Shown here piece by piece: positions 440-55,066 of a DNA stretch of 64,000 bases (position 1 is its first letter; each line of letters begins with the position of its first letter). The translations under genes were made by a program, and so were the position numbers. The DNA lies in contig OZ037771.1 of the NCBI GenBank assembly GCA_964035545.1, positions 2,677,628 to 2,741,627 of the forward strand, in the 5' to 3' direction. This DNA comes from Bugula neritina (lineage: Eukaryota > Animalia > Bryozoa). The notes below the pieces were generated by a model. That model did not search any database. It was not told the DNA's origin and was given only the letters and a program-made list of their open reading frames with translations.

Positions 440-3400
440 TTGAAGAGGGAAACTGGTGCTGATGTTGGTCTCTTGCTCTCCTACACTCCTTCGGATGACG
501 ACTTTGTAATTAAGGTAATTCACAAACCTCTAAAATCTATCTCAACGCATTCTGTAACATATGCAAATATCTATGGGCTCTTTGGAATGTTTATTAAGTC
601 AGTAAAGGCATGGGTAAATCTTTTTCAATATTTAATTTCATTAGCTTGCTCAACTATTTCTATTAAAGTTAATTTTGACTTGATAAGTTGTTTGATTCAA
701 CTTTTATTCAAAATATCGCAAGAAAAAAAATCGAAACTGAATATTTTGACCTACTAAGGTTGTTACAAAACTTAATTACGTGTCTGAAACCCTATTTATT
801 GACCATAAAAGAAAAGTAAAAATTATATCACTGCTCACTAGCTCCATGTTTCTGAGGCTGTCATACTTAGTAACAAATATCTGTAGCCTGCCAAGCAGTT
901 TGACATGTGTCGCATGGTTCTTGTCACTCTGTCTCCATGTCATCTCTTGTCACATTTTTATTTCAGATTACATATTTTATAAACCCAATTTTATTGTAAT
1001 CCTAAACAACCTGCTTTCTAATTAGTTCATAGTCTGAATGCTTGGAGTCAGCCATTTTTATTTTATTAATAATTCCATCTTATCCAGACCAGTTACCGTA
1101 ATATCATATCAAGTATGACGTAAAGCATTGCTTAACCATCCAAATATATTATAAACCATCTTGTGTCATGTGATGTGTAGGTTACCAGGATATATTTTAC
1201 TGCATTTCAGTGAATTCTTAAAGGAATGTGATTTTATTTCAGATATAAATATTTTTACCAATTTTAATTACTTAGTGGTTATTTGAATTTCTTGTTTATC
1301 TAATTTCATTAAAGCTCAACTATGATGTATTTTTAGCAAATCCTTGTCTGTAGCATATATACAAGTGTGTCACTGTGTTACCTTGTGGCAATCTATAATG
1401 GTAGTTCTGTTGACCAGTCTGTCACTTGGATTATATTCTAGCATATTCTATAGCATTCCTCCCACCTTGTCTGGTATCCATCTCTTCACCATTTTCTCAC
1501 CTTGATTATATCGGTCATCTTCTAACTTTTCAGCTGGCATGTCTACAGATTGTGATAGTAAAATATTTGATCTCTTTAAGCCCACAGTTTCCTAATCCTC
1601 ACATTCTTTAGGTCATGATTTAAGGACTTGACAGTCTTGTTGTTGTACAAGTGCTGCCCAACGGCTTTTATACACAGATCTTTTTCTTATCTATTCTTTT
1701 TCCTAAAATTGATTGGAAATTTACTCACAGTTTAAAGTCATATTGAAAGAGCTTAAAGGATGATTTGTTTTAGTCTCCGCTTATGTGTGGCATTTTTAAG
1801 CAAATGTTTTTTAGTTATGTGTGTGTTATAATGTACTTATATCTGTTAAACAGATTGTTGTTTAACAACTTTTGAAATTGAAATATCTTTTTTTGTTGTA
1901 GATCTATTGTTAATACCATGTTTCGACTTTGGTATTTTGTCATGTTTATGTAATAACTACAATTATGAGTTGTAGTTACTTGTATTTTTTGAAAAACAAG
2001 TTGCTTTGATCACCTTGAATCACTAATTTTCATTGAACCAAAACTTGCTAATAGGTCTTATATTTTATTGATCTTTTAGGCATTGGACGGTAAAGTCATA
2101 CCAGAAAAGAGATTTCCTTCATCGTCACTACCAATACTACAATCACATTTGAACTTATCTCAGCCTATTCTAACTTCCTGTACTTCGGAGCTAAAGAGTA
2201 ATCTCACATTAATTGCTGGCCAGCCTCTTCATCCTGAACACTGTGTCTTAGCCCCAATAAAACAGAGCAACAAACTGATTGGTATTCTCATACTCCTGAG
2301 TGGAACACCAAGGCAAGCCATATCCAACCGTTTCTTGTGTTTTCTGTATTGGCATTTGATAATGCATCACCTTCATATTTGCTTTAAGATTTAAAAAAAA
2401 TTCTATTGGTTTTTATGAAGTTGATGAATTTGTGCGCTATGGGCACATTTCTTACATAATCAATTATTAGGTGGTGGTTGCTGATTAAAAGTGACTAGAC
2501 TGTGACAGACAATTATTAAATTATGATGAATCTGTGTAGGTTAATTATTTACTAGTGTCTTCTGAAACACTTTACGTCTGTAAAATGCACATCTTCCAAA
2601 TAGCCAAGTTTTTCTAAGATAAACTTATGTTTCACTTTTGTCCCATTCTAAGAGGATCTCGTGTATAAAATATGACGTGCTTTTCAAAGATAATGCAAGG
2701 TTATAATTGTTATTTGATTCGCTTATATATTGATGCAACTTATTAAAGGTCATCGTACGCAACTGCGTGGTTTGTTGTTTGTTGATTCCATGGTGACTAA
2801 TTTTGCAATATTTTCAAGTAGCTTACTGCATACACACAGTCTTAGCCTCCTACAATGGTAATGTAGAAAATAGTGAATAATACTCAAAGCATTTAATGAT
2901 TTACAGTTACTGATCAACTCTTATTGAATAACAACTTATTGATTACCAGTTGCTAATGAAGAATTATATAATCATAATTTATTCTTTGAAATTCAGGTTC
3001 AAAGTGCACACCCAAACTTGCTCTGAAATTCATTCTCCTCAATTACAGGGATTTACATTATTTATAAATTAATAATTTCAAGTTGCATACAGATCAAAGA
3101 TGTCTACAGTTTCAGCGCCTCTATCTGCACTCAAATCTAAAACATATTTAATGTAATTTTATGTCAGGATTCATGTTTCCAAATGCTTTACTTCTTGGAT
3201 TTACTTGCATACATAGTGAAATTACACACAGCTTGCTTTTGCTACTAGCTTTCTAGAAGGTTATTTTACTGCTGGTATCAGTTAGTTATATTTATAAATT
3301 TATTGAAGCTTTCAGTTTGAGTAGTTTCTGTGGTTTCAGTTTCTAGTTGGTCTGTTAAATATATTGAGAATGTTTGAAGATTTGGTTTAATGAAGAAAGT

Positions 3401-6400
3401 TGTTCACATCAAATGAGGAGTTGCTAGAGAAATGAGGTGTTGGGTAGAACCACTGTTGAAACCAGTAAAAGTACATTATTGGTTTTCTGGTAATGGCACT
3501 ATGTAAATGAGTTTATCTGTTTATTACATCAGTTTGTACCCTTCTCTCTCTCTCTCCCCCCCCCCCCCCCCTCTTCACTAAAGTATATTCACCATAATAT
3601 GCCCAGTTCCACTAAAATAGCTGTAAGCCTAAATTTCTTATGTTTCATTGTAAGGCTGCCATTAGTTCTATTTTCTCCAATTTTTTTGCACATAAACATA
3701 TTTTTTCACTGAAATTTAATCCTCCCTGCAGAGTTCTAGTAGAAAACCAACTAATTCATCATTTCAAATGAGGGATGAAAATATTTTGCAATTAAGAGAT
3801 GCTAATGGACCATTTTCCCACAATTATGTAATTATTATTATCTCTTTGGAGAGATTTTTACACATTATTGCTCTGAGATGAGTACTTTCAGATATTATGC
3901 AGAGTATATTTATGGCTTGTCACATCTTACGTAAGCTAATAGGGCCTAACTGTTGACTTATCTGCCTTTATTTCATAAACATGGTCACACTGCAAGGTCT
4001 TTAGTAAGCAACTTCTTCTGCTGTGATACTAATAACTACTAACCTGTTAAACTCGCTTTAAGTTTAGGACTCCTCAGTTTGTATGGGGTTGGTGTTGACC
4101 TGTTGACCTTTGGTTATGAATCTTGGAGTGATTGAACTTCTAAAACCATTTTTGTTGATTAGGTTTACCCAGGAACACTTGGATATGATCGAAGCTGGGC
4201 TGTCCTTGTGTGGCTCTATGCTGTACAAAGACATGGTGGTAGAGAGGGAGCGAACTCTTCGTCAGCAGACGGAGGTAAACTTCCTGGCATATTCACACAC
4301 TTCTCGCCAAAGCTAAGCATTTTTTTCATAAATAACTAATTTGTTGTTACTGATACTCTTACATTTACTACTTTGCTAAGTCTCATTTATATATCTTAAT
4401 AATTTTTTGTTTTACAGAAACTTCATCATGTGGCAAAGAACATTTTTACTCATCTTGGTAAGTAAAGTTGTTTTAGAGCTTGGATTTCACTCAACTATTA
4501 TGAAAAATGTTTCATTCACAATATAATATCTGCACATCCAAACTCTGCTATCCTCTTTCTTCCTTCAGGTACTCAGTTTAGCCGTTTAATTCAAGATCAT
4601 TACCAGCAGTTGATTGATCATGTTCTCATTCCTGACTTCCCTTCACCAATCCAAGCAACTCACCACACTCCTCTTTATAAAAATGTTTTCATTCCTCCAA
4701 TCGGGTGTCAGCGTCTCATCTCTCTAGACAATCGTCTCTTAATTGTTGGGCCTCGCTCTGCTCGCTATAGTACCGATTGGGACTGCAGCCAAAAGATATC
4801 TGGCACGACTCTGGATGATATGGGCACAGTCATTGGCGTGTACGACACGGGACATGCCTACTATGAATCTTCCAGTTATATTAGTGTTGAGAGTGATATG
4901 CCAAACCACCATCTTGGTGGTTCCATCATTCGAGAAAAGTGGGAAGCTGGAATGCCCAATTTAGGAGACATTCGTGAAGAAGGCGAGAGCTCCTTGCCCG
5001 ATGCCTCTCTTTACACAGATCTCAACTCCAGTATAGGCAAGCCAACGGAAAAGAATTCTCATGTGCATTATGGGATAGACTTCACAAGGCGTGGCTCTCT
5101 TAAGGCCGAAAATACTCTGCATTTACAGGAAACAGATTCAAACAATAATGCTGACAATGGACTAAATGAAAATGACAGTCAGCGAAAGAGTCAAACAGCC
5201 AGCGATCAAAACAATGACATCATTAGTCAAATATTCTCTGCTGCAACGGATTCCCCTCAAGCAACAGCAAAGCCGAGGCGATCTTCAGTTGCCAGTGCTC
5301 TGCAACGACCTTCAACTTTTGCTGCATATCGATCAACTGGTGTTGAGTCAAGAACTCATATGCAGAAAACCGTGCCCTCCTCTGCTAGCAGGACTGCCAT
5401 GAACTTTCGGTCGGAGAATAGATTTTACTCTGTGAATTTAAACAGGCCCAATAAGGTAGCTAGTAGATCTAATATGCCTCGATCAGTTGTGTCCAATCAT
5501 CAGCTCAAAGGTAGTCCTGATATTGGAAATAGCCGGCCCCGAACTCCGCCCATGGAAAAAATAGTCTACAGTTCTACTGTTGATGTCAAAGATAAAGCAG
5601 TTAAAAACTCAACAGATGTCAATGCTGAAATAGTGAAAAAAGCTTCTACTGTAACTGAAGAATGTGTGTTTCCACAAGATGACAGCCTGAAAAATCTTAA
5701 AAGTTCTCGAACCAAAGTAAACCAGTCCACTTGTGATTTAGATTCGAACTACACAGATCTTTCTAAGGAAAGTTCCCAATTGAGTAGAAATGATTCGGAA
5801 GAAAGTGCTGAGCTGAGAAAGTTTCAGGCGGTTATGAAGCAAGATTTTCATGTACCTGGTCAAGGTCATATGGATAAAAACATCATCCATCCAATTCATC
5901 CACACAGACGCATATCTGTTTTAGAAGAAAGTGACCAGCATTTGAACACAGCCAGTGACACGAATGAAGTAAGTAATGGGTCGCATGAAACTGCGCATTT
6001 CCACAAGCCATCACTTTCTCCCAAAGGCCATATTGAGAAGTCTGGAGATCAAGATGTTGTATTGGCTCATAAGCCATCATCTTTGACGCTAACAGCTCAT
6101 GTTCACGACAAAGCTGCTATTGCCAAATCTCGTGAATCTTTAGTCGTGCTTTCTGGCGGCAGCAAAAAAGCGCCATCACAAAATGTTGATACTGACACGT
6201 CTAGTTTTAATCACAAGAGAAAAGGGACTATTGATGCCTCCGTAAATCGAAAATCTGTTATGAGTTTAGATTCACGAAGTCGTGACACCAATGATAACCG
6301 CATTACAGTTGCTGATAAGCTTGAGAAGAAAAGAAGTACATATAAGAAGGTTTCAGCGACACTGCCAGCGCCAGCTATTGATTACGATCATATTAGCATG

Positions 6401-9400
6401 ACCTTATCTGTTGCAGACGGTATATCTGGTCCCTTTAAGCACCGGCCTTCTCAGGTTGATAACTTTTCAAAATTGAGACGATCACTGGCTGACTCAAAAG
6501 GTGCTGATCGTTTTCTTTCCCCTCGTAAAGCAAGCAGCCAACGTTATGTTGGACGCAAATCAGCTAGGTTAGAGGACAGCACCCACAATTTGGCAACCTA
6601 CCATTTGTCTAGCCATGCTCCTGTCATTTCTAAAGGCATCCAGCACACGGTGAAAATGCATGACGCTTCTGTTCAAGCTAACCATTCGATATTTAGATCG
6701 TCGATATCACCCATTCCAAATACTGAGAGATCACTGTCTTTCTCTCAGCCTCTCGCGGATTATAGAATGTTCCAAATACAAGTTCCAGATGAATCTAAAA
6801 CTAGTCTAACACACCCACATAAGTCATCAAGCCTGGATGATCAGCATTTGCTGAATTCGAAGGCTCTGTCCGACAGTTCTGCCCGATCTAGCGTTGACCC
6901 GAATGTCAACCCTAGCCTGCTCCCGCTTATTAGCCCGGTTTCAGGCACGGTGCTGTCAAATCTTTCTAAAGTCACTGAAGAACGAAACCGTTTGAAGGCC
7001 AACAATTCTTCAGTCATTTTCAGTGAATACTCAGCCAAAGGAGATAGCGACATTGAAAGCTTGCTTTATGAAGATAATTTGTTAGAATGGGATGAAAATG
7101 GCGGGAAAAGGTTATCCAAACGGCGAAAACATGCCAAATTGGTTGAGGTCAGGACGCTGAATATAAACACCCAAGAGTACGAGACGTTTGTGTGGCGTTA
7201 TAGAACCTTACAGATCTGCAAGCTCACCCCAGTGACTGGCTGCTCAGCTTTGGATGACTGTACGTTGAAAATGTCTGCCTTTTTACCTAATCATTGTGCT
7301 GTCTGTTAAGCTTATAGTTGCTCCCATTTACCATTTTACCATCCTCATAGTCTCCTTAGTCTGCCTGTGTATCTCATCTCTTACTTCAGTACTAATATTT
7401 TTCACTCTCTCTCCCTCCTTGTTGCTGGTAGGCTGCTTTCTTTGTAGTTTATACACTGATTTTTGAGAACAAGTTACTAAATGTTTTATTGTATTATTAG
7501 AATAGTAATTGTTTAAGGTGCTTGATAAAAGTGTGCTAAACAATATATTACACCTTTCTATATTAGTCTATTCTAAAGATGTATTATGTTGTATTCAGAG
7601 TAAGAATGGGTTGTAGATGACTTGACCATACTACTGAAGGAGATTATGCAAGAGGCGAGGTACTTGTGTCACGCCGAAAGATGTTCCGTGTTTCTTCTAG
7701 AAGCTGAAGCCAACGAGTTAGTTGCCAAGGTGTTTGATGGTGACATCGCCTCCAATGAGGTAATCTTGTTTGAAACACATTAACTTCTAACTGCTTTACA
7801 TGTGGTTTTGTTGTTCATCTATTTGATTGTGACTTTACATGTCTCTCTGTAACGTGAAATAAATTTTTTAATTCAGTACTCTGACAGTTTTAGCAAAAAT
7901 ACTTTGTTCATATCAGACTGGAATGTTCCATGAAGTTTCTAAATCTTTGTCATACCACATAAGCAGGATAATGCTTTCTTTTGTAACCAATCTTAAACCA
8001 CCTTTTCACAGGAAGTGCGTATGTCAGCATCTGAAGGTATAGCTGGTCAAGTTGTACAGACAGGAAAAATCCTAAATATAAAAGATGCGTATTCTCACCC
8101 GCTGTTCTATAGGGGAGTGGACGAAACGACTGGGTTCAGAACTAAAAGCATTCTCTGCTTTCCTATTAAAGATGAAAAAGGTAAGCTTTTTGCACCAGAA
8201 CAACAAACTTACCATTTGCAAAAATAGTTTAGTATTAATTATTGTAAACAATGTATAGTCCTGCAACAAAACACAGCCATTGCTAGTCTTGCTTGCACCA
8301 ATCTCCATGGTTTAAACCTCCAACTGTCGCACGATATTCTGGGATGTTGAAGAGTTGTGGGTGAGGTGGAACTGTGTAAACTCGTGGTTTGGAGTGCTAT
8401 TTTGTGTCTGCTATGGCATCTGGTAGACTGCCTGACAGCATACATGTATTTCCTACCTACCATAGACATTACTAGACTTTATTCTAGACATCAGTGTCAG
8501 AGCTGAATACTTACAGTTTAAATGTTCTGGAATGTTCTAGTATATTCTAGAAAATGTGGATTTGCTGTAAGAGGCTTCAGCGACATCAACTTATATAAGT
8601 TAATAATTTATTCTATGCTATTCTACTGGGGACATATTTTAACAAAAAAATTGACATACAGTTTTTAATTTATAATTTTATTGATTAGTTTGGTTTTCAG
8701 TGCAACTCTAGCCATGCTAGCCATTCTCCTTTTTCCAGGACTATTGTTGGTGACGGCGATATGGCTTCAGACACACCTGGTCTGTTGCATACATTTGGCA
8801 CGGGCTTAAAGGAGCACTCAAATGTGTGGCTTTGAAAGTTTTCATCAATTTTGCTTTTATTTAGGACGTGGTATTTGCTATTGAAGCATGTCTGGTCATA
8901 ATCCAGACATAGGAATGCCAGTTCCTGGTTAATAGCGGATCTGGCTAAATACAGTCTGTGTTTTGTAGACAAAATTATCGGAGCAGCTCAACTGTGCAAC
9001 AAAATCGGCAGTTCGCACTTCAACTCCACCGATGAGGTCATAGCCAAGGCACTGGCCACGTACTGCTGCATCAGTATTGTTAATGTAAGAATATATATCA
9101 ACAGTTTCTGTATTAAATTGAAGTTGTCCTCTTTTTCATACATACTGTTTATAAATACAGCCAATACTATAAGAGTTATTAGTGAAATGAGCGTAAGTAA
9201 AGGATATTTCAAGCAGTCTATACTGTGCCTAGCTGTACATGCTATTTACTGTGACCCATATATGAACACCATGCATAGGTACCATACAACGCCACCACTA
9301 CTGTTATTAATATAACATATGCACTTCTTGCTAACCGTCTTATCTGTATCTTGTAGAGTATAATGTATAGAGATGTTCTGGATGCACACAACAGGGTTAA

Positions 9401-11105
9401 ACTGGCCAATGAGCTTATGGTGTTTCACATGCTGGTAAGTATCTGTACACTGATTGGTTACAATCAGCATATGCTGCACACTGATTGGTCACAATCAGCA
9501 TACGCTGCACACTGATTGGTCGTGTGGTGTGCTTCCAGTCACATGTTGGATAGTTGAACTCACAAGCATATTTGGTAAAAATAATATTATCTTTTTATTG
9601 AAAGAGTTTTAGAATAGTTTAAATAATAGCAGCATTATTATGGCAGTGTTCAGTCTAGCCTACCTAATAAAAAATACGCCCCTCAGTCACTTACAGCGTA
9701 TATATCTGATTTGCTAAACCTTATTCTTTTAAACTTCTCGTTGTGTGCGTCATAGCTCTCTCTAGTCCACTCGAGTTCTTAGCATTGTTTGCTAACAGAA
9801 CAGTTTGTCCAATTGGCAAGAGCCTTCGAACGTCTGCCAATGTCCCTGTCAGTGTTTAATCAAGAATTTTTTTGTTGTTTTATTTTCTGCTTGTGTGGAA
9901 ATATCGGAAATAGAAATCTTCAATTCTAAGGTGCCACCTAGTGAGCTTGCTGCTGTGTTTCAATATTAGTTTTTCGGGTATATTATGTTTACTGAATGCA
10001 TTTATAAAAAAAACATATGAAAACTTCAAGTTTGTCAGCTTCATCTCAGTTTTGGCTTTAATCTGCTTTCTTGAAATTACTTTTCTAAGATCCAAGACTC
10101 TGTTTCCTGCAGGTTCCATCGCAAGACGTCGTTGAGTTGATGAAACAGAAAATTATTCCTCTCGCAGAGTTTGGCAAAGAACTACATTTACAAGACTTTA
10201 AGAATTCTCTCCCTAGATATGTTCCTATAAACTCCATGCCTATGGCAAGTTTTTTCTCTTTTCTTTCCACAATTGTGTTCTTGTTACTCATTGGGTAGAA
10301 GGATAGCTTGTTTTTACTTCTTAACATTTTTATATTCCAACAGAAAGGGTAACTGTTGGAGTCATTAGAGTTGGCGACTTTTAGAGATATATGGTTTGAA
10401 ATGTTGGTTTTTACTACTAACTTCCTTTCATTTCTATAACAATTATTTGTTTGTTTCAGGCGGTAATGAGTATGATGACAGAATTAGAATTTTGTAAAAA
10501 TTTCAAGATAAAATCCCAAACATTAGCAAGGTTGGTATGCTATATGACTGGGATACTATCAAGTTACTTTGTGTAATACTCTGAAAATGTTGCTACGTGT
10601 TTCCCGCCTTGTTCTCACAGGTTTGTGCTGATGGTGAGGAAGGGTTACAGAGACCCCCCGTATCACAACTGGAACCACGCCTTTTCTGTCGCTCACTTTG
10701 CATACCTGATATTGAGAAACATCAGATGTGTGGCTGAAGGAGTTTTAGAGTGAGTACACCAATTTCATTTTAAACTTTCTTTATTGTTCGTTATTTGCTT
10801 GTATGTTAAGGTACAAGTACCAAATAGAAGCATGCTTCTATTACTGCTACCTTTACGATAAATTATGAATTCTTATACATATTGTTTTCACTAATCAAAG
10901 ATAAAGTAATCAACTAATAAACTTACCATAATTTTTTTGGATAAAACTTTAGCAGTATTTAGAAGTAATCTTTTTTGTTCTATTTCTTTATACTACACAG
11001 TTTCACTGCTAGTCATCATACATGCAGCAGAAAATTGTGTTCTATCACTTACCTACTCACTTACTTAATTACCTAATTACTTACCTACTTACTTATTTAC
11101 TTACC

Positions 11106-11137
<32 letters not shown>

Positions 11138-13460
11138 CATTTACATACTTACTCACTTTTTTATTAACTCACTTACTTACTATATTTACTCACTTATTTA
11201 CTTACTTATTCACTCACTTACTTACTTACTTACTCACTTACCTACTTACATAGTCACTTATTTACTTACTTACTCACTTATTTACTATCTCAGTTACTTA
11301 CTTACAATAATTTTATTCAATTCTGCAGTGAGCTCGAGGCATTAGCATTCTTTGTGGCTGCTCTCTGCCACGATATAGATCACCGAGGCACAAGTAATTC
11401 ATTCCAAGTAGCATCAGTAAGTATTCTAGAAATCTTCTAAATGATGATGACTATGAGAGGGCAACTCCTACTTAATATTTATTATCTTAGGATTGTTCTC
11501 CTATTTGGAACTCGCATCTTGGTTGGACTTTACTCAAAATAAAATATGGAATTAATTTTAATGTGATTATAAAGCCATACTCTGGTGCATTTGTGTTTTT
11601 TATGTTTCATGGTTTTTAAGGAAGTTAAATATGTTGTATATACATTGTAGAACTCAGTTCTGGCAGCTCTCTACAGCTCAGAAGGCTCAGTGATGGAGGT
11701 CAGTAGGTCAAGTGGTTTATATGGTTATAAAATTTTTGCAGGTTGTTTTTGAGCTTTTCAGCTTTTTTTAAGTAGCAGTTCTTTAAAATTCATTTTGAAA
11801 ATAAGATGAAACTAGCTGTAATTTTCTCCACCTGTTGTGGTATTCTATAAACTTTTCCTCTCAAGTAATGAGTATATCAAGTATATGAAATAATTGGTGA
11901 TATCATTCTGTACTATTGTGTGTGTGTGTTTCAGAGACACCACTTTTCCCAAACCCTCTGCATACTCAACACTGAGGGATGTAATATATTTGAAAATGTT
12001 ACTCGTAAAGAGTATGAGCAGCTACTTGACCTAATTAGAGATATCATACTCTCCACTGACATTGCTCATCATCTGCGTATTCGAGGTGGACTCGAGGCCA
12101 TGGCAGAAGGTTTGTTATTTCAAAAACGTATTTATATTGGTTTAAAAGTTCTAAAATTATTTTTAGTGCTTATATTGCTAAACTTGCTATAAAAGCTGAA
12201 TTAATTTTGAATACATGATAAAAGATGTCAGGTTCGAAGCTTTTAGATTCTTTTGAAGTTTCTATACTTGTAAAAAGTTATATAACATGTCAGGTTATCG
12301 AGTGCCATGTGATAATTTGTTGTCTTGCGCTACCTCGTATTATACGAGTGAAGCCGTGATGTAACACTCTCTTTGATTTGCTACCGTGTTACTGAGATGC
12401 TGTTGTATTCTGTAGAGGGCTTCAACAAGACCAACCCTGAACACAAGTCCCTCCTATTGTGTCTAGTGATGACCAGTGCTGACTTGTCCGACCAGACTAA
12501 ACCCTGGAGCGCTGCCAAGAGAGTCTCGGTCAGTTGACTAGCCTTTGTTCTTGTCATCTCATCAGTTTTTGTATCATTGTGGTAGCTTGTTCATGAACCT
12601 GAGGCTGCATATTGCATGTCGGCTGCTTCAGAATAGAATTGATCACATGCTGTTATATTAGTCAAGCTATATTTAGGTTCTCACTTGTCGAATGTCGTTC
12701 TAGAAAATGCTATACAAGGAGTTCTTCTCGCAAGGAGACTTAGAAAAAGCCTTAGGTCGTAACCCAATGGAGATGATGGACAGAGAGAGGGCCTCTATAC
12801 CCGACCTACAAATTGGATTTATTGATCACATAGTTCTTCCAGCATTCAGGTTGGTGTTTCCTTTTTAGAAATTCAAAATGAAAAATGCTGCCTTCAAGAT
12901 GATTATAAATTATTCAAAGGATTTTACTCAAAGGTGTGCTGTTACTGTGAGAAAATCTTTGTAAACCAAATTCTATTTCACATAAGCTTATGTAAAGTAT
13001 TTTACATTACGTAACGGTTATGTAATGTAGCATACTGGCTTTTACAGGTCTATTTATATCTAAAACGTTGTTTACTTTGTTTTGAAAAAATATTATTTAC
13101 TGCTCTTCATTTAATTTGTACAAACGTTCAATTCATTTTGCATAACGGTTTTTGGATATTTGGCACTTGTTAAACACTATGCATGTCGAGTGAGAATAAA
13201 CATTATCAACAATTAATTAAACAGTCTCTGATATAGAATTGATCTCTTACTGTACATGACTCTTTTGTAGAACTCTTCGTACTGTGTTTCCCACAACCGG
13301 GTGCCTAGTAACTAACATTGAGGAGAATAGAGAGCATTGGGTGACTATCAAGACAAAGACGGCTGATAGAAGAGACAGTCTCACATCTTTAGAGGTCTTT
13401 GACTTTATAGATGAAGAGGATGAGCGTGAGAGTTCCGGTGAAGACATACCGTCTGCGTAG
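440..13460 (+). CDS. PDE2A: cGMP-stimulated GAF-domain cyclic nucleotide phosphodiesterase, PDE2 family (5' end upstream of window)
   Basis: Phase-compatible exons 440-514, 2080-2312, 4163-4274, 4418-4457, 7617-7759, 8012-8180, 8969-9084, 9357-9434, 10113-10244, 10460-10530, 10621-10749, 11329-11416, 11651-11698, 11935-12109, 12416-12528, 12704-12850, 13271-13460 (TAG). PDE2-typical motifs: [38 protein letters not shown]...[76 protein letters not shown]. Confidence 0.93.
4569..7309 (+). CDS. Candidate giant alternative (terminal) exon of PDE2: about 913 codons, Ser/basic-rich, ends CAVC-stop
   Basis: Strong pyrimidine tract plus CAG (tcctctttcttccttcag, AG 4567-4568). Joining to the phase-1 donor at 4457 gives ...[23 protein letters not shown]..., in frame with ORF 4610-7309. 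A 2.7-kb stop-free frame in AT-rich DNA is unlikely by chance. Confidence 0.7.
9447..9520. repeat. About 2.5 copies of a 30-bp intronic repeat (acactgattggtcacaatcagcatatgctgc-like)
   Basis: Visible tandem repeat just downstream of the PDE2 donor at 9435. Confidence 0.75.
11045..11305. repeat. Degenerate (TTAC/TCAC)n tetranucleotide microsatellite in a PDE2 intron
   Basis: acttacttacttac/actcac runs; explains spurious ORF 11022-11345. Confidence 0.9.
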
Positions 13461-18900: not shown

Positions 18901-21900
18901 AAATCAAAGAGCTGGAGGAGAAGCAGGAAGACTTGCAGGAGAGGAAGCAGCAGGAGGAGAAGAGCATGCTGAAAATCATGGAGAATATTAAGTCAGAGAC
19001 AGAGGTAAGTTCCTTCTCCTGTCATTCTGTAAGTAAGTATATGTAAGTACGTGTCTGTAAGTATATGTAAGTATGTGTCTGTAAGTATATGTAAGTACGT
19101 GTCTGTAAGTATATGTAAGTACGTGTCTGTAAGTATATGTAAGTTCATATCTGTAAGTATATGTAAATACATGTCTGTAAGTATATGTAAGTACGTGTCT
19201 GTAAGTATATGTAAGTACGTGTCTGTAAGTATATGTAAGTACGTGTCTGTAAGTATATGTAAGTACATGTCTGTAAGTATATGTAAGTACATATCTGTAA
19301 GTATATGTAAGTACATGTCTGTAAGTATATGTAAGTACATATCTGTAAATATATGTAAGTAAGTGTCTGTAAGTATATGTCTGTAAGTACGTGTAGATAA
19401 CCTCGGAGTAAGTTATGCATGAATTGTGAGTCTTAGTATCAGTTCGCTTGCTCATCCTGTTGGTATTGTCTCCTCGTAGACCTTTGATCCAGGCTTTTCT
19501 GGTTGTTAAAAATTAGCAAGTCTCTGGTGTTTTATAAAGTTTTGCCAAGAATCATAGCAAAAATCATATATCAATCTTGTAGCTGTTTTAAGGTTGCATT
19601 CATATCAAAGTGTTTCCTGTTTTCTACTTTAGGATCTGCAGAAACGAAAGACAAAGCTGGAGGAACGGTTGCTGGGCTATCAGGGTGAGCTGAATGAGAG
19701 GAAGTCTAAAGCAGACGTTGCCAAGGCGGAGCTTGATTTGACTAACTCCTCCTACCAGAAAGAAAAGGATGCTTTTGACAAAATGATTGCTACATTCGAA
19801 CAAGCAGGGAAGGGAATTGAAAGCCACAAAGTGTGAGTTTTTTTTAATTTTATTGGACAGCTATAATATCAGGTTTACTATGCGTGAATAAGTAAGTGAG
19901 TGAGTGAGTGAGTGAGTGAGTGAGTGAGTGAGTGAGTGAGTGAGTGAGTGAGTGAGTGAGAGTGAGTGATAATCTTCCACTCATCTTTTGACTCTCTAAT
20001 CAGGTTGCTCAATGAGCTACAGACTAAGATCCCAGACACTGAGAAGTACATTGTGGAGACGGGTGAGCAGTTGGAGCATGTCACTGCAGCGGAGAAAGAG
20101 CTAGGTGGCAAGGTTAGCCATTTAATCAGTTCTTTTAGCTTCAAGCTGGGTATGCTGAGTTGTAGATGCTATAGGCTCCTTCTAGCACCATTCAGTATCT
20201 TTGAAGTAAAGCTTTGTTACCAGTCTGTAGGTTTTTAGAGATGGTAAAAGCGATTAAAACAGTTTGATATAACAATGGTACTCATAGCATAATGGTGAAT
20301 AGATTACAAGCAGGTGTGTTGTATGTGAGGTAACTGTATATACTATGTATACTATGTAAACTCTATACACGCAGCTACAAGCTCTCCACAACAAGATCAG
20401 AGACTGCTCCAGTCAGATGTCCAGCAGAAGAAGTCAGTCGGCCCAACTCCAAGCTCTGATGGACCAGAAGAACTCTGGTCGAATACCGGGTATCATCGGG
20501 CGTTTGGGAGATCTGGGTGAGTGACTGTTGCAGGTGCTATTGGTGACATGCTGATACAGGTGCTATTTATGACATGCTGATACAGGTGCTATTGATGACA
20601 TGCTGATACAGGTGCTATTGAAGACATGCTGTTACAGGTGCTATTGATGACATGCTGTTGCAGGTGCTATTGAAGACGTGCTGATACAAGTGCTATTGAT
20701 GACATGCTGTTGCAGGTGCTATTGATGACATGCTGTTGCAGGTGCTATTGATGACATGCTGTTACAGGTGCTATTGATGACATGCTGTTGCAGGTGCTAT
20801 TGAAGACGTGCTGATACAAGTGCTATTGATGACATGCTGTTGCAAGTGCTATTGATGACATGCTGTTGCAGGTGCTATTGATGACAAGTACGACATTGCC
20901 ATATCTACAGCCTGTGGCCCTCTGGACAACATAGTTGTAGACACGCTGAAAACCGGCCAGCAGTGTGTGGAGTATCTGAAGCGAGCCAATCTCGGTGTCT
21001 GCACATTTATTCTACTAGAGAAAATGGAACAGTGGGTGGAGAAGGCAGATCGTCCAATCAAAACGTATGACACATATTCTTCATGGTGTCCAGCTATTTG
21101 TACGGTTTAGTTTCTCATGCAGCCTACATTCAATGCTAGAATACCCTGTTCTGTATTTACAGGCCCAACAATGCTCCCAGGCTGTTTGATCTGGTGAGAT
21201 ATAAAGACGCAAGACTGAAGGGGGCCTTCTACTACGCCCTCAGGGACACTCTAGTCGCTGATGATCTCCAGCAAGCCTCTAAAATAGCCTTCGGTTAGTA
21301 ACTAGTTTCTCCCAACTAGGTCCTGAGGCTAATGCTCTGAACATGTTGCTACTCTGTCATCAGGAGTTCTTACAGGGAAGATTTTTAGTTGATAGAATTT
21401 CGTGGCTTAACAGAAAGCACACCTTTTTTACTTGAACATAAAGTGTGCTGTAAGTCTGCACTAGTGTGTTACTGTAAGTCTACACTAGTGTGTTACTGTA
21501 AGTCTGCACTAGTGTGTTACAGTCTGGTACAATGTGCACACGCTGTTTGTAGGAAGTGTCAGGTACCGGGTGGTCACTCTAGCAGGGCAGCTCATTGAGG
21601 TGTCTGGGGCCATGTCAGGTGGTGGGAGGCCGTCCAAAGGTCGGATGGGTTCCTCTGTATCTACAGGAGACGAAGTTTCCCCGGAAAAGCTCAAGGAGAT
21701 GGAAGCTAAGCTCGAAAAGGGGCGGGGCAAACAGCAAAGCCAAAGGTAAAGTTGACGTAGTTCTCACCTGTTTGTTGTTGGTTTACTTTGTGTATCATTT
21801 CACTGAGAGTTGATTAATATAGTGTAAGTTTTATACTTGTGGTGTAGCAACTGGGGAGTATATGTAAGTGGTGTGACAACTTGGGGGTACATGTAAGTGG

Positions 21901-24510
21901 TGTAGCAACTTGGGGGTACATGTAAGTGGTGTGACACATCACAATACTTCTCTGTGGTAAGATTGCCAGGTAGATTGCCTAAGCTTAGGAAACGTTGCAA
22001 GTGAAATATACCTGTATTCCGTGTACCTGAGTTGTTCTGCTCTACCGGGTTTATTCGTCTGCAGCACTAAAATCTCAGACTTGACTCTAAAGAAGGACAA
22101 GTTGACAGAAGAATTGCGAAAGATGAAAGCTACTTTTGAGACGACACAGATGGAACTGAAGGTTGTTATGTTATGAACTACTGCAATGTATAGTTTATAC
22201 TGTATTACACTAAGTTATGTTACCCAGTATTACAGTGTATGATATTGTGTGTTGTATATTACGTGTTATATAATATAAAGCTTGATGTACCAAAGTATAA
22301 CTTAATGTAATATACATGCTGTAATTATGATATATTAGTCAGGTATTATAGGCTATGTATGTTATATGATACAATTACATTGCTGTAAGGCTCAAGCTTA
22401 TGAAACACTTTCGGTTTTGGCTGCTGTTTGCTGTTGACAGTTGCTGCCAGTGTCTGCTGATTCAGGGGTTCACCCCCTTAGTGGCAACCTTTCACTGTCA
22501 TATTCTTCATAGAAGTAGAAATTTACTATCAAATCCTCTGCTCTATTTGTATTCTGTTATTTTCTTCACATGCTGCGTATATTTATAAATAATTACTAAT
22601 TTGTGTTTAGTAATATTTCCATACACCTAATGCAATAATTAGTGCGTAATTTTGCAGAAGTTGAGTGTATTTCCCGTGACGTTACTCTGTATTTCCTGTT
22701 TAGATGTTTACCGATCAACGAAGCACTTTGAAGTCGGAGATTAAAAATCAAGAAGCCATTGTGAAGAAATCCAAACCCGATTCTCGGGTGATCGAAAGAC
22801 TAGAAGACAAGTACACCAAGTTGCAAGATGGTAAGTAGAATGGTGCTGTAACTTACTTTAAATAGGTCGTACTTTGCTGTAGAGTGTAGATGTACTCTTT
22901 TAGCTGCAGATATGCTCTACTTACTAGATACAAATATGTGGTGCTGCAGATACGCTCTGCTGTAAGTGAATTCTGCACATGACCTCTACTGTTGCTATTC
23001 TATAGAGTACAATGTGCTGCACAGCAAGACCTCAGTGATAGAGCAGGAGTCACAGGCACTGCACAAACAGATTCTGGAGCTCAGTGAGAACAAGATGAAG
23101 GCGGCCCAAGACAGAGTCAACAAAGTCACCAAGGAACTCGAGGCTAACAAGGCCAAGGTCAACAAACTGAACGTGGCCATCAAGTCTAACAGCAGGTTAG
23201 TGGAACTGAAGCTACGTTTACTAACGACTCTGTTTATGAGCTGATGAAAGTTTTATTTGTTTTAAAAAACAGTCGCTTGTGTTTTACTGAAAGAGTTGTA
23301 TAGACATATTTGTTCTGTCTCAGGAATTTGAAGAGGGCGATGGATAAGGAGAGCTCTTTGTCGGATGAGCTGGCCGAGTGTAGAGCTCAACAGGAAGATA
23401 TCGAGACCAATCAGCTGTCCAGCTTGAAGGAGCAAATCGCGGGCATGCTTCAGACATACGATGAGAACTTGGCTAAACTCAAGGTCAATATACTGTATAT
23501 ATTATATGTTAGCATAGCATCAATATACTGTTTATATTATATGTTAGCATAGTATTAATATACTGTATATATTATATGTTAGCATAGTATCAATATACTG
23601 TATATATTATATGTTAGCATAGTATCAATATACTGTATATATTATATGTTAGCATAGTATCAATATACTGTATATATTATATGTTAGCATAGTATTAATA
23701 TACTGTTTATATTATATGTTAGCATAGTATTAATATACTGTTTATATTATATGTTAGCATAGCATCAATATACTGTGTATATTATATGTTAGCATAGTAT
23801 CAATATACTGTGTATATTATATGTTAGCATAGCATTAATATACTGTATATATTATATGTTAGCATAGCATCAATATACTGTGTATATTATATGTTAGCAT
23901 AGTATCAATATACTGTTTATACCGTTTCTATGGCAATTCAGGAGGTAGAAGACAGACTGAAAGAATGTACAAAGAAGATTGATGAGATTGAAGGGAAACA
24001 GAATCAACTTAAAGTATGTACTCGCTAGCTCTATGTACTCGCTAGCTCTGTGTACTCGCTAGCTCTGTGTACTCGCTAGCTCTGTGTACTCGCAGATGTT
24101 GTACATGCAATCATTTATATCAGTGATAGTTACCAACTATGTCTGAACAATTTCCTATAAAGGCTGACAACCCCCACACTATTTGCAGCTCTCTATGGGC
24201 GAGAAGCGACGGGAGTTAGAAAATTATCAGCGAGCCGTGAAAGAGTGCGAGACAAGGAGAAACGCAGCCCAGAAAGCACTTGATAAACTCGCTCTTCATA
24301 AGCTGCCTGACGATAAAGAGACTCCCACACTTTCTGTCTTGTCTGAGGAAGAGAGGTGTGTGTAGTAGTAGTAGCAGTAATGGTACTAGTAGTAGTAGTA
24401 GCAGCAGTAGTAGTAGTAGTAGCAGTACTAGTAGTAGTAGCAGTAGCAGTAGTAGTAGTGACAGTAGCAGTAGTAGTAGCAGCAGTAGCGGTAGTAGTAG
24501 TAGTAGTAGC

Positions 24511-24545
<35 letters not shown>

Positions 24546-26690
24546 CAGTAGTAGTAGTAGTAGCAGTAGTAGTAGTAGCAGTAGTAGCAGTAGTAGTAGT
24601 AGTAGTAGTAGCAGTAGTAGTAGTAGCAGTAGTAGCAGTAGTAATAGTAGTAGCAGTAGCAGTAGTAGCAGTAGCAGTAGCAGTAGTAGTAGCAGTAGTA
24701 GTAGCAGTAGCAGTAGCCGGAGCAGCAGCAGCAGTAGTAGTACTACTACTGCTGCTATTTAATGATTGAGTGTATGTTGAAGCTAAAAAAATGTTCTGTT
24801 TATCCACTGATCAGAAACAAGGTAGATGTGAAGAACTTTGAGTATCAAATCACCTTCTTGGAAGAAAAGCTCAGCAAAAAGAAACTAAACATGGCAGCTA
24901 TTTCTGAGTATAGGTGAGTGACTCACCTGCATCACCTCTCCATCCGACTCACCTCTAGTTACCTGTGACTCACCTCTAGTTGCCTGTGTACCTGCATTGT
25001 TCAGGTACTCGAGTAACTAGACAGTTACTCTGGAGGGGGTAACTCCAGAGTTACTAGGGGGAGTAACTAGAATATATTTAGAAAATGTCTAGAGACTAGT
25101 TTTCTTATTCTTAAGGGGTGTTACAATAGTCACCCATTTACTATATATGTTTGGGTTCAGATATATTTATCAGACACATATAGCGAATCTGCATGTATAC
25201 TATGCCAATAGGAAAAAGGAAGAGCAGTATATTGAGAGAGTGGCTGAATTGGATAAAGTCACTCAAATTAGAAATAAACAAAAAGACTTGTGTGAAGAAA
25301 TGAAAAAACAGCGTCTGCATGAGTTTATGGCGGTAAGAGTTGTATTCTCATAACCAAGTGTATCCCACAATGCACTAGTTATACTGTGTATCCCATAATT
25401 CACTAGTTATACTGTGTATCCCACAATGCCCTAGTTATACTATGTATCCCACAATGCCCTAGTTATACTGTGTATCCCATAATTCACTAGTTATACTATG
25501 TATCCCACAATGCCCTAGTTATACTGTGTATCCCACAATGCCCTAGTTATACTGTGTATCCCACAATGCCCTAGTTATACTGTGTATCCCACAATGCCCT
25601 AGTTATACTATGTATCCCACAATGCCCTAGTTATACTGTGTATCCCACAATGCCCTAGTTATACTGTGTATCCCATAATGCCCTAGTATACTATGTATCC
25701 CACAATGCTCTAGTTATACTGTGTGCCGTCTGCTGCTAGGGTTTCTCCCTCATCACCAGCAAGCTGAAGGAGATGTACCAGATGATAACTCTGGGCGGAG
25801 ACGCTGAGCTGGAGCTGGTGGATACGCTGGATCCCTTCAGTGAGGGTATCGTGTTCAGGTAATGTGCCACTCCCTACTAACTACTCACTCACTAATCACT
25901 CACCAGTCACTCTCTAGTCACTAGTCACTCACTCATTAGTCACCTATCAAATAATTTAATCCAACTTGCCAATATCAGTTATGTTGAGGAGAGTTATTAG
26001 CGTTACTTCAAACCCAGGAAGCCGATTGTGGTGATGGTTGAACTCTGACTCAGTAGCTATTCTGCTATCCTATGCACTGTAGGTCTAAATACTTTAATTG
26101 CCTTCACTGATCTACTTTAGTGTGCGACCTCCCAAGAAGTCGTGGAAGAACATCTCGAATCTCTCAGGAGGTGAAAAGACCCTCAGCTCCTTGGCTCTAG
26201 TGTTTGCACTTCACCACTACAGGCCCACGCCCCTCTACGTTATGGACGAAATTGACGCAGCCCTTGACTTCAAGAATGTTTCTATCGTAGCCAATTATAT
26301 AAAAGTTAGTATAATAGTAGCCAATAGAATTTGCTGTAGCTACATGGCCAGCACAGTGAATGCCACACTAACTATAATCAATTTATCCAACTATTGTGTG
26401 TGTTACCATTGATTTCATCTCTACCTGGTTATATTGTAAGAGAAGTCATACAGTGATTGCATTTAACCTGCACATGTCGTTCATTATTTGACTTTCACCT
26501 TAATTGTTGCGTATTTTCAATGTAGGAGCGAACAAAGAATGCACAGTTTGTCATTATATCTCTCCGAGACAACATGTTTGAACAAGCCAGCCGATTGGTC
26601 GGTATATACAAGACTCATGACTCTACGAAGACCACCGTGTTGGCCATAAAAGACAACAGCTTCATATCTCTACCCGCATCCAAGACCTAG
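15966..26690 (+). CDS. SMC4: Structural maintenance of chromosomes protein 4 (condensin subunit), about 25 coding exons
   Basis: NFKSYAG..LGPF; Walker A IVGPNGSGKSNVIDAMLFVFGFRANKIRSKKLS; IDLDHNRFLILQGEVE; hinge GRLGDLGAIDDKYDIAISTAC and YRVVTLAGQLIEVSGAMSGGG; YQMITLGGDAELELVD; signature LSGGEKTLSSLAL; Walker B VMDEIDAALD. First coding exon 15966-16183, last 26526-26690 (TAG). Confidence 0.97.
19029..19392. repeat. 24-bp minisatellite (gtaagtatatgtaagtacgtgtct) x about 14 in an SMC4 intron
   Basis: Direct tandem repeat; each unit contains two GTAAGT. Confidence 0.95.
19892..19968. repeat. (GAGT)n microsatellite in an SMC4 intron
   Basis: gtgagtgagtgagt run. Confidence 0.95.
20525..20886. 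repeat. 26-bp minisatellite x about 14 whose unit is the SMC4 acceptor/exon junction (catgctgttgcag|gtgctattgatga)
   Basis: The last unit runs into the coding sequence GAIDDKYD (exon starts 20872). Confidence 0.95.
21448..21520. repeat. 24-bp repeat x3 (ctgtaagtctgcactagtgtgtta) in an SMC4 intron
   Basis: Direct tandem repeat. Confidence 0.85.
21836..21937. repeat. About 29-bp repeat x3.5 (gtggtgtagcaacttgggggtacatgtaa) in an SMC4 intron
   Basis: Degenerate tandem repeat. Confidence 0.8.
23486..23921. repeat. 35-bp minisatellite x about 12.5 filling SMC4 intron 23484-23941
   Basis: caatatactgtatatattatatgttagcatagtat units start immediately after the GT donor. Confidence 0.95.
24016..24094. 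repeat. 17-bp repeat x about 4.5 (tgtactcgctagctctg) starting at the donor of SMC4 intron 24014
   Basis: Direct tandem repeat. Confidence 0.9.
24362..24755. repeat. (AGT/AGC)n trinucleotide microsatellite filling an SMC4 intron
   Basis: gtagtagtagcagtag run between exons ending 24355 and starting 24815. Confidence 0.95.
25358..25725. repeat. 28-bp minisatellite x about 13 (gtgtatcccacaatgccctagttatact) filling SMC4 intron 25333-25739
   Basis: Direct tandem repeat. Confidence 0.95.
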
Positions 26691-29643
26691 CTCCATCTAC
26701 TGAAGAACATCAATGCTACTGGCCGTAGACCCACACGCCTCCTACTAACATTAATTTTTGCATAATACCCTCCTATGCTATGCCGTATCTCGTTTAGTGT
26801 CTACTGTTCCACCATTTTAGGGTCTCGTAACAATTCTTGTTTCTTCTGCTAGTGGTTCCATTTATTTTTTTTTGAAGGTAGTAACATTGACTCTATTCTT
26901 ATGAATAGTAAATTCATATTAACACATTTGTATCAGTGTTAAATGTTTATTTTATTGAATATTGTAACCACAAGTTTTGTTGGTTTCCTTATACTAACAT
27001 TTTATCCATTTTATTACTTGTCCATACATTTGCTGGGCACCATTTTTAAGCAATTTAGTTAAAGACAATTTTATAACACTTTATACTTGCAACATGTCTT
27101 AAAATACAAACTATGTGAATATGTGTAGTTCTTCTTCGTTTTTCTTTGCAGTTTAAGTCATGAATAGTTTCTTCATCACGCAGCATAATTATGCATGTTG
27201 CGCTACACAACACTTTATATCTATGTGCTCGCTTATTTAACTGCATTTTACCATACCTTTACTTCTTTATTCACTTAAATCAAATTTCCAACAAACATGT
27301 GTAGAAAGGATATTTACTGACACAACTATATTTATATAATGAATGATGTCTTATAAAAGTATCATCTCACTTTTGGTAATTCACTCAGTATCTTCAGAAA
27401 TCAAAATATAAGTTGTTTAGCCCAAAACTTTAAGTACATAAGTGGTAAATCAAGCAACCCACACCTTCTAATGTCATTTTGGTCAAATAACACAAATATA
27501 GTAGAAACTATAAATAAAAGACTTAATCCTTGTGTGTGTAATATAGTTGTGCTCTCCTGCATAATGAAGTTAGTCCAACTCTAATAACTCTATTTCAATG
27601 TTATTCCCAATCAGTAATTTGACAAAGTTTCTGGAACCTTAAACCTTGTTATATATACTTGCAATTTCAACTATAATTCAGTAAATTGTGACACGTAAGA
27701 ATATATTTGAGTAAAATTAATTGTAAACCTAATAGTCCTGTTTCTAATTTAAACCTTTTTCATGTGAATTACTAATGGCGCCAGAGAATTATGCAGACAC
27801 ACAATAATGTGATCTGGTGATATATTGATATATTGTAGCCTATTGTGGCTCAAATTGACCTTTTCATTGAATTAACTAACTTAATTTAAAATAAGTCTAT
27901 GTTGGTAGTATGTCAATAATTAAATAAAAAAAAACAAATGTTGACACATCTTTATTTTCATCTACTTTCAGTAAACACAGACGATATTCTCGGAATTGAG
28001 TCAGGGCACCTGTCGTTCTTTTAATGATCAACACTTTTCAGCTGTTGAACACACTTCAACTGCAGACTTGAGAAAGAAGCCAAAACTTGCTGTGAAACAA
28101 GAAGCTTCATCTTACACACAGAGGCAGCAATATAAACAGCAAGCAGATTATATTCCATATTGCAGTGAATGTTTGATAAAATTGTATATACTGATGAGTA
28201 CACTATTGTTTGTATTATATTCAAACAATTTAGAGTGAATATTATAATTGAATGACATCCAAGTGCTATAGCAATGTTTTGGTTTGAATCTTGCTGCCAA
28301 AATGACTTCCTTATTAGCTGCATTGCTTTGGAAATGTGAAACTTGCTCATTGTAGTAGCAGCTAGTGTCTGGTTGCTTTCTGTTCTATTCTTTCACATTT
28401 TCTAGTCTGCATATCAGCCATGAGTTTGGTAACCTTATTCAGCCATTTATCTTTATGGAAGTTTTAATATGTTTCAACAATTTAAATTATTTCAAAATGG
28501 AATAAATCGCCATTAAAATTGAATTCAGAATCAATACTTAGAAACATGAACAGACGTGTAGATAGTGACATCTGTAACCTGATAGACTCAGCTGTAAAAA
28601 TTGATTTGTTGTGATTTATATTAAAATAAAATAAGATTAATTTACAGTTAAAGAAAGTATATAAGAGCACACAGATACAGTTAGTTTTCCACTATAATGA
28701 AATGAATCTGCTGCACTAAAAATATTAAATTAGTGTATATTGACAGGATTGGTGCCTATATTGAATTAGTAATAGAAGACAGGTGCTGTATTTTAGCCTA
28801 TTTCATTATTTTAACTTTGGACTCTTAGTATTTACAGTAGAAGATTGAATTACATTGCCTAAGTTTTTTAAATTACACACGTATACTGTATACATACACA
28901 TGCGTAAATGAGGAAAAACGCTGGTTGTGCGAAAGGTCACTGTTTTAGGCAGCCAATGCAAGCAGGAACAAAATTGAGAATGGAAAACTTGCTGGTGGTT
29001 TCGTTTCTATAGCTTCAAAATCTATGGTTTTGATTAAAAGTTAAAAACATCTAAATAGCCGTTTTATCTAAACTCTAAAGCAACATTCGTAAGCAGCAAC
29101 AGTTGAACCAAAGTTTTTATCGAGAAATCGGTATTAAGTTATAATTGGCACTTTTGTCCTTGACCTGGAATATAAATTACCATGACATAGAAAGTTCCCG
29201 GAGATTATAAAAAAAGATAGCTCCAAGTTCTAGTGGCAATGTCACCATCCCTACTGGAAATATATACAAGTACAGGTAAAAAGTGTTGCCTTTGCTTTCT
29301 GGAATTCAGGCTTAAAGTAAGAATTCTGTTATAGCATAGGGCTGAACATTTGTAGGTTTCACATTAGAGATTGCTTTGCAGATGTCACGTGATTAACTAG
29401 CCACAAAGAGTTGTTTCCCTAAACCCTGGGCCACATGACTCATCCATATAGTAGTACGTGACTTGTTACTAGTTACCTCCAAATAAGGAAATACCTAAAT
29501 ATCAGAATATGTTAACCACACTATATTATCTCCAAGGCAGCATGCTGCCTGTATTCTTGATGTCAGGTGATGTTTTCTTGACATAAAAGATGTGAGTAAT
29601 TAGGTGTAAGTTTGAGAGCTGGCCTCAAGTAATCTTTTGTAGG

Positions 29644-54737: not shown

Positions 54738-55066
54738 TACACACACACACGCACACACGCACACACAGCACACACACAGCACACAGCACACAGCACACAC
54801 AGCACACACACACACACAGCACACACAGCACACACAGCACACACAGCACACACAGCACACACAGCACACACAGCACACACAGCACACAGCACACACAGCA
54901 CACACAGCACACACAGCACACAGCACACACAGCACACACAGCACACACAGCACACACAGCACACACAGCACACACAGCACACACAGCACACACAGCACAC
55001 ACAGCACACACAGCACACACAGCACACACAGCACACACAGCACACACAGCACACACAGCACACACA
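54738..55066. repeat. Compound (CA)n/(CACACACAG)n microsatellite
   Basis: Visible repeat; source of several spurious ORFs. Confidence 0.95.

Follow-up and report, generated by a model that had tools for sequence, protein, structure and literature searches.

A giant coding exon in the PDE2 gene of Bugula neritina, probably included as an in-frame cassette ahead of GAF-B

The window analysed here is a stretch of 64,000 nucleotides (nt) from the bryozoan Bugula neritina (contig OZ037771.1, positions 2,677,628 to 2,741,627 of the forward strand), which carries on its plus strand a gene of the cyclic nucleotide phosphodiesterase family PDE2. One intron of this gene, 4458-7616, holds a stop-free frame of 947 codons (4466-7306, +), as found in a scan of the window for open reading frames and composition. 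A reading made from the sequence alone, hereafter the original prediction, had taken this frame for an alternative last exon that turns PDE2 into a catalytically dead, prenylated isoform. We describe evidence that most of the frame, positions 4569-7259, is a coding exon under purifying selection, which a minority of transcripts probably include as an internal exon, so that the reading frame would continue into GAF-B and the catalytic domain.

The host gene

Pfam places a GAF domain at 7619-8191 and a PDEase_I domain at 11288-12856 on the same strand and in one gene, with GAF-A-like exons upstream. All protein searches were run exon by exon. Against PDB, the GAF-B exon matches PDE2A with an E-value of 1.7e-25 versus 2e-14 for PDE10A, while the catalytic exon 11905-12108 gives 2e-22 and 1e-12, respectively; for exon 7617-7759 the top match is PDE2A, residues 409-452 of 9lrn. 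As PDE2A leads PDE10A and PDE5 by about ten orders of magnitude and the domains follow the tandem GAF/PDEase_I order, the host gene is, judged by its sequence, a PDE2 orthologue, with GAF-A encoded upstream of the open frame and GAF-B starting at 7617, in agreement with the original prediction. The PDB alignment puts the insertion point near residue 408 of human PDE2A; a review assigns residues 215-372 to GAF-A and residues 393-541 to GAF-B (PMC7590001). In GAF-containing phosphodiesterases (PDEs), this stretch corresponds to the helical connector LH1, which leads into helix alpha-1 of GAF-B (PMC6392808). Exon starts and ends were set from joints in RNA of a close relative (see below), by which the start of the upstream exon is corrected from 4417 to 4418 and the end of the first GAF-B exon lies at 7759. 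The features of the host gene are as follows, a slash marking exon boundaries.

Ends at 514 (+): upstream PDE2 exon, part of the GAF-A/linker coding set together with 2080-2312, 4163-4274 and 4418-4457
2080-2312 (+): PDE2 GAF-A exon; RNA joint 2310>4161 with three ambiguous bases
2313-4162 (+): GC-AG intron (AAG/GCAAGC ... AG); only a +2 shift of the RNA joint yields GC..AG and preserves the frame
4163-4274 (+): PDE2 exon with the end of GAF-A and the start of the GAF-A/GAF-B linker helix, from RNA joints and translation; the orthologous exon of locus L006 is 78% identical
4418-4457 (+): 40-nt PDE2 exon, 13 residues plus one base, with donor TTG/GTAAGT; joints 4274>4418, 4457>7617 and 4457>4569
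7617-7759 (+): first GAF-B exon; position 1 of the Pfam GAF profile at 7619; joints 4457>7617 and 7759>8012
8012-8194 (+): next GAF-B exon; PDE2A (3ibj/9lrn) at E 1e-25 versus 1e-14 for PDE10A and PDE5
11288-12856 (+): PDE2 catalytic-domain exons (PDEase_I, by Pfam; positions recalculated from genome to window numbering)

Directly before the first catalytic exon, the PDE2 intron contains an (ACTT)n microsatellite (11047-11305) with about 64 copies, which translates as an open 'LTYLLTY' frame.

An open frame within a PDE2 intron

The intron 4458-7616 lies between the 40-nt exon and the first GAF-B exon. Counted from the acceptor (AG at 4567-4568) up to the stop (7307-7309), its open frame has 913 codons, which is the length originally proposed. 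Exon 4418-4457 reads in the same frame, the sole break being a TAA at 4463-4465 right after the donor. Donor 4457 (TTG/GTAAGT) and acceptor 4568/4569 are indeed compatible, both being phase 1 (g + gt, giving Gly), and the acceptor preceding 7617 does have the poor pyrimidine tract that had been pointed out. With a stop expected at about 6-7% of codons, a run of 947 codons without one would arise with a probability of about 1e-25 to 1e-30 (arithmetic from composition), which excludes a chance origin of the frame. The G+C content reaches 43% in the frame versus 33-35% in its flanks, the whole window having 34.7%. A transposon or repeat origin of the giant exon was ruled out because its sequence occurs only once in the 216-Mb genome, so it is not a mobile element; the remaining long open frames of the window are tandem repeats or belong to a reverse-transcriptase element.

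A candidate donor, ACT/GTACGT, sits at 7259/7260, 47 nt before the stop. The segment it delimits, 4569-7259, comprises 2691 nt or 897 codons with phase 1 at both ends, and would thus keep the frame through to the GAF-B exon at 7617, the junction codon in the window being TAT (Tyr). The following elements belong to this segment and its flanks.

4458-4568 (+): intron of 111 nt upstream of the giant exon; acceptor AG at 4567-4568 after a pyrimidine tract; spliced in an X2 contig (GT..AG, depth 9.7) and also seen retained
4569-7259 (+): giant exon, encoding a Ser/basic-rich, mostly disordered (predicted) insert with conserved islands; characterised by dN/dS, orthologues L002-L011 and single copy number
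4571-4756 (+): N-terminal module of the insert, about 62 residues, a predicted helix followed by YKN[IV]FIPPI..QRL.SLD; mean column identity 66% in alignment A3
5285-5287 (+): codon of Ser239 in an R-x-x-S site (RRSS); R236 and S239 invariant
5915-5917 (+): codon of Ser449 in the basophilic-kinase consensus RRxS[IV]LEE, present in 7/9 sequences
7142-7225 (+): predicted C-terminal beta-hairpin and helix, exon residues ~858-885; AlphaFold2 on alignment A2 gives a predicted local distance difference test score (pLDDT) of 85-88; V860 and W875 invariant
7260-7265 (+): GTACGT, conserved as a 5' splice site; in 9/9 independent lineages its G, T, A, G and T are unchanged, with identical aligned position and phase
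7260-7309 (+): read-through tail to C-A-V-C-stop, translated only on intron retention; found only in the window and L002
7260-7616 (+): 357-nt intron after the giant exon, with 7260-7559 unusually conserved; orthologous introns measure 256-490 nt

Coding constraint

Selection was assessed against L002, a contig of a relative that is about 93-94% identical to and colinear with window positions 4037-8551. Mismatches over the exon fall at the three codon positions as 26/12/81, and the sole indel measures 6 nt. The ratio of non-synonymous to synonymous substitution rates (dN/dS, Nei-Gojobori) is 0.14 over the exon and 0.08-0.21 per 150-codon window, versus 0.9 and 2.1 in the other two frames, while the exon's dS of 0.139 comes near the intron divergence of 0.11-0.13. 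Also in independent lineages, where synonymous sites are saturated, the proportion of non-synonymous differences stays far below that of synonymous ones. The opening 100 codons lack an ATG and are as constrained as the rest, so translation must enter from an upstream exon. By this pattern of substitution, the giant exon is a real coding exon under strong purifying selection.

The flanking introns are conserved as well. Both 4458-4568 and 7260-7559 are about 95-100% identical to the relative, above the level of the exon's synonymous sites. Taken as introns, the two flanks reach about 95-98%, with 95.5% for 4458-4568, versus about 88-90% for other introns. Elevated intron conservation is usual beside regulated exons, and the conserved flanks may carry splicing-regulatory elements.

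Orthologous loci and a conserved donor

An exhaustive HMMER search of representative sequences returned eight distant orthologues (26-37% identical, 880-941 residues) and a profile search added one; the contigs were then compared, and flanking exons were checked wherever a contig reached them. A word-indexed protein search (single exon; A1) retrieved only P0001, P0002 and P0010, and a metagenome contig scan with A3 only four contigs of one lineage already known. One orthologous contig derives from a marine-biofilm metagenome.

Ten loci share the layout of a 40-nt exon, an intron of 111-846 nt, the open exon, an intron of 256-490 nt and the GAF-B exon, the 40-nt exon being found upstream of the giant exon in six loci besides the window. 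The original prediction had asked for conservation at the same intronic position with dN/dS below 1; these ten loci share the position, and dN/dS measured against L002 is 0.14. In the orthologues the giant exon measures 2631-2961 nt, and its length is a multiple of three in every case (2691 nt in the window, and nine other loci). Homology begins exactly at an acceptor ag/G that follows a pyrimidine tract (11/11 loci) and stops, in all ten loci, at a donor N/GTAyGT at the same aligned position (10/10 loci reaching it). Downstream the sequences are unrelated, and an in-frame stop follows after 2-47 codons. The codons overlapping the donor vary (Cys/Ser/Arg, then Thr/Met/Arg), whereas its nucleotides G, T, A, G and T do not. 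Invariant nucleotides over varying codons mark a 5' splice site rather than a conserved peptide, and use of the donor at 7259 is therefore most likely. Joined to GAF-B, the orthologous exons would give a junction codon for Tyr, Asn or His, never a stop, and the frame continues.

Gene callers report the open exon in contigs as a stand-alone protein of 880-1078 residues, as would befit an independent gene that is nested within the PDE2 intron and has a promoter and start codon of its own. We consider this very unlikely, since no ATG is conserved and the constrained first 100 codons of the window have none, homology is bounded exactly by the conserved acceptor and donor, RNA links the frame to PDE2 exon 4418-4457, and strand, frame and intron are unchanged in ten loci.

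Splicing in a close relative

RNA was represented by assembled contigs of two runs, X1 and X2, both labelled as metagenomic RNA-Seq, of a relative with about 94% identity to the window; such assemblies drop rare paths, so that the absence of a rare joint from them proves nothing. Spliced joints at five PDE2 introns show that both runs hold RNA. The constitutive joint 4457>7617, which skips the giant exon, has depths of 300 (X1) and 52 (X2). The inclusion joint 4457>4569 (GT..AG), which had been predicted, occurs with a depth of 9.7 in one contig of X2, amounting to roughly one sixth of 4457>7617 by junction depth, a rough ratio since these are contig depths. Over the giant exon the depth is 45-52 in X1 and 8 in X2, with 19-21 and 2-5 over other introns and 300-500 and 50-86 over PDE2 exons. 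Inclusion is thus a minority event, and most transcripts splice 4457>7617.

Exon depth of only about 2-2.5 times the intron background, together with this minority inclusion, is what one would also see if splicing noise or intron retention ran over a fortuitous, functionless open frame. A dN/dS of 0.14 and the persistence of 880-990 open codons through ten lineages with saturated synonymous sites make this explanation extremely improbable.

Between 5611 and 5764, X1 contains two alternative contigs (depths 25.8 and 37.8) over the same 150 nt of the exon, both with a 6-nt insertion after 5744, which suggests two alleles or strains in the sample.

The C-A-V-C end and the fate of the downstream intron

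In the isoform put forward by the original prediction, transcripts would end after the stop at 7307-7309 and encode GAF-A with a tail of 913 residues and a farnesylated CAVC, that is, a membrane-anchored, catalytically dead PDE2 decoy without GAF-B and catalytic domain. The junction 4457>4569 exists, RNA contigs pass 7259 unspliced through the stop, and the C-A-V-C end is present in the window and retained in the close relative L002. It is not a conserved terminal CaaX, however: it lies 3' of the donor kept in 9/9 lineages and is absent from 8/8 more distant orthologues. Over 7260-7309 the window and L002 differ twice, both times non-synonymously and without a synonymous difference, unlike the exon. 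AATAAA and ATTAAA are lacking from 7260-7616, where only GATAAA at 7524 and AATATA at 7542 occur, and the exon instead ends at a conserved donor that is phase-matched to GAF-B. A 3' end after 7309 had also been predicted; the X1 and X2 contigs, in which true 3' ends are not visible, list neither a transcript 3' end nor a joint from inside the frame, and proceed into exon 7617. Further, many junctions follow downstream of such a stop, which would be expected to make the mRNA prone to nonsense-mediated decay. The original prediction had itself named an internal donor before the CAVC end as speaking against its isoform, and such a donor is strongly implied at 7259/7260 by comparison, although not seen in reads. 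Taken as intronic read-through past a conserved donor, the CAVC makes a prenylated dead isoform a tempting reading, and in our view a wrong one; we rate an alternative last exon as quite improbable.

A related explanation dispenses with the CaaX motif. Here the next intron would be kept in all species and the protein would end 2-47 residues past the donor position, leaving GAF-A with the tail as a dimerising decoy or scaffold and GTAyGT as a regulatory element. It would account for the in-frame stop that every lineage has soon after the donor, for the unspliced contigs over 7260-7616 and for the unusual conservation of 7260-7559. Quick in-frame stops past a donor are normal for introns, though, and this explanation accounts neither for the invariance of the donor at the nucleotide rather than the amino-acid level nor for the phase match to the GAF-B exon, which holds in all lineages despite 330 nt of variation in exon length. 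We deem it unlikely; a truncated isoform from intron retention, with or without the fortuitous CAVC, forms the main rival to a cassette exon.

A probable in-frame cassette exon

Together, these observations lead us to regard 4569-7259 as probably a lineage-specific cassette exon of PDE2, an internal exon of giant size that is included alternatively and is in frame to GAF-B. Most transcripts would join 4457 to 7617 and encode an ordinary PDE2, whereas a minority would use the acceptor at 4568/4569, leave the exon by the donor at 7259/7260 and join the GAF-B exon at 7617 in frame. In the protein, the junction Asp (~Asp408 of human PDE2A) would be swapped for Gly, 895 further residues and Tyr, yielding a full-length PDE2 that retains GAF-B and the catalytic domain and carries some 900 additional residues where the linker helix meets GAF-B.

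Several points weigh against a cassette exon. The joint 7259>7617 is not listed in the X1 and X2 contigs, which are assembled contigs only, and contigs of both runs instead go unspliced from the giant exon across 7260-7616 into exon 7617. These two points are weak, because rare paths are dropped in assembly and unspliced pre-mRNA amounts to about 5% of the exon depth in both runs. The joint 4457>4569 is listed in one of two runs and has a side of only 26 nt, and the RNA comes from the roughly 94% identical relative rather than from the window's own organism. Querying with an alignment of the C-terminal 130 residues brought up no short spliced fragments of peptide over the 3' junction, and the donor ACT/GTACGT is not a strong one. 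Finally, 897 residues placed into the helical connector of GAF-A and GAF-B could disturb the dimer geometry, so that a folded, active enzyme is not guaranteed.

Sequence and predicted structure of the insert

Besides its N-terminal module, alignment A1 shows conserved islands across the insert, namely REK..PNLG.I.EE.E, NNNAD, a helix NDSEES..LR.FQA, RKSVM.LD with an invariant Ser562, SGPFK and SP.SGTVL. AlphaFold2 returned a mean pLDDT of 34 for the whole exon, with a helix at residues 2-19 at about 60; for the last 130 residues the mean was 58.6, the confident part being a hairpin-helix of 30 residues only (85-88). Disorder is accordingly predicted for nearly the whole insert, apart from a short helix at the N-terminus and a small hairpin-helix at the C-terminus. 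Pfam gave no match for the exon or any of nine aligned orthologues, a PDB profile search with A1 no match either, and an ESM Atlas feature search only weak matches (<=0.80) to unrelated disordered fungal proteins. The basic Ser/Thr motifs listed by the original prediction are present: [RK][RK]x[ST] occurs ten times in the insert versus 2.9 +/- 1.6 times in shuffled sequences, and two sites are conserved. These RRxS-type sites make the insert a candidate substrate of PKA/PKG-type (basophilic) kinases. It may serve as a regulatory or docking loop, through which phosphorylation, kinase feedback or the binding of partners could control or localise PDE2 in particular cells.

Comparison with known systems

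In mammals, PDE2A likewise combines an N-terminus, GAF-A, linker helix, GAF-B and catalytic domain in this order and is diversified by splicing. Its described variants PDE2A1, PDE2A2 and PDE2A3 vary only in the N-terminal localisation region (PMC7590001), whereas the gene of the window would vary by an insert of about 900 residues between linker and GAF-B. A limited paper search turned up no GAF-containing PDE described as carrying an insert between its GAF domains.

The closest functional analogues are the giant neuron-specific cassette exons of ankyrin-G and ankyrin-B, which encode disordered inserts. They resemble the proposed PDE2 exon in being multi-kilobase, in-frame and alternative, in encoding a Ser-rich, phosphorylatable, unstructured segment between folded domains, and in evolving fast around conserved islands. 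There is no sequence relationship, and the ankyrin host is a membrane adaptor whereas PDE2 is an enzyme. The catalytic subunits of PDE6, also a GAF-containing PDE, resemble the window in the Cys four residues from a possible C-terminus; there, however, the CaaX is conserved and ends a full catalytic subunit, while the CAVC of the window is intronic read-through in two near-identical genomes. Long forms of PDE4 have a PKA site in UCR1, and PDE5 has a PKG/PKA site near its N-terminus. The insert, with RRxS[IV]LEE and the invariant R-x-x-S, would similarly have its RRxS-type sites in a regulatory part of the protein rather than in the catalytic domain; these predicted sites differ in lying between GAF domains and in lacking sequence homology to those of PDE4 and PDE5.

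The GAF-A/GAF-B helical relay carries allosteric signals in GAF-containing PDEs. We propose, with some reserve, that a marine-invertebrate clade has evolved and keeps under selection a regulated giant exon that puts some 900 disordered, kinase-site-bearing residues into this relay, so that cGMP activation, dimer geometry or localisation of the isoform would be set by phosphorylation or docking partners; retention of the next intron could add a GAF-A-only decoy. Known PDE2 isoform diversity is all N-terminal, the core of GAF-A, linker and GAF-B being treated as a rigid, invariant allosteric unit. If the proposal is true, a selected insert of this size, placed exactly there, would amount to a natural experiment on the tolerance of the relay helix and to a new way to wire a phosphodiesterase into kinase feedback or scaffolds. 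For annotation, long 'intronic ORFs' (open reading frames) that contig databases list as stand-alone proteins can in fact represent giant alternative exons.

Other elements in the window

Downstream of the PDE2 gene, two overlapping open frames of 494 and 240 codons at 29596-31763 (+) match RVT_1, and the frame change that splits them suggests a retroelement copy with a frameshift. A minisatellite cluster at 19033-25724 has arrays of 12-18 copies with periods of 24, 26, 29, 35, 6/21 and 28 nt; this cluster and (ACACAGCAC)n at 54739-55066 make up most other long stop-free frames of the window. A further stop-free frame of 275 codons lies at 57947-58771 (-); neither a Pfam match nor a tandem repeat was reported for it.

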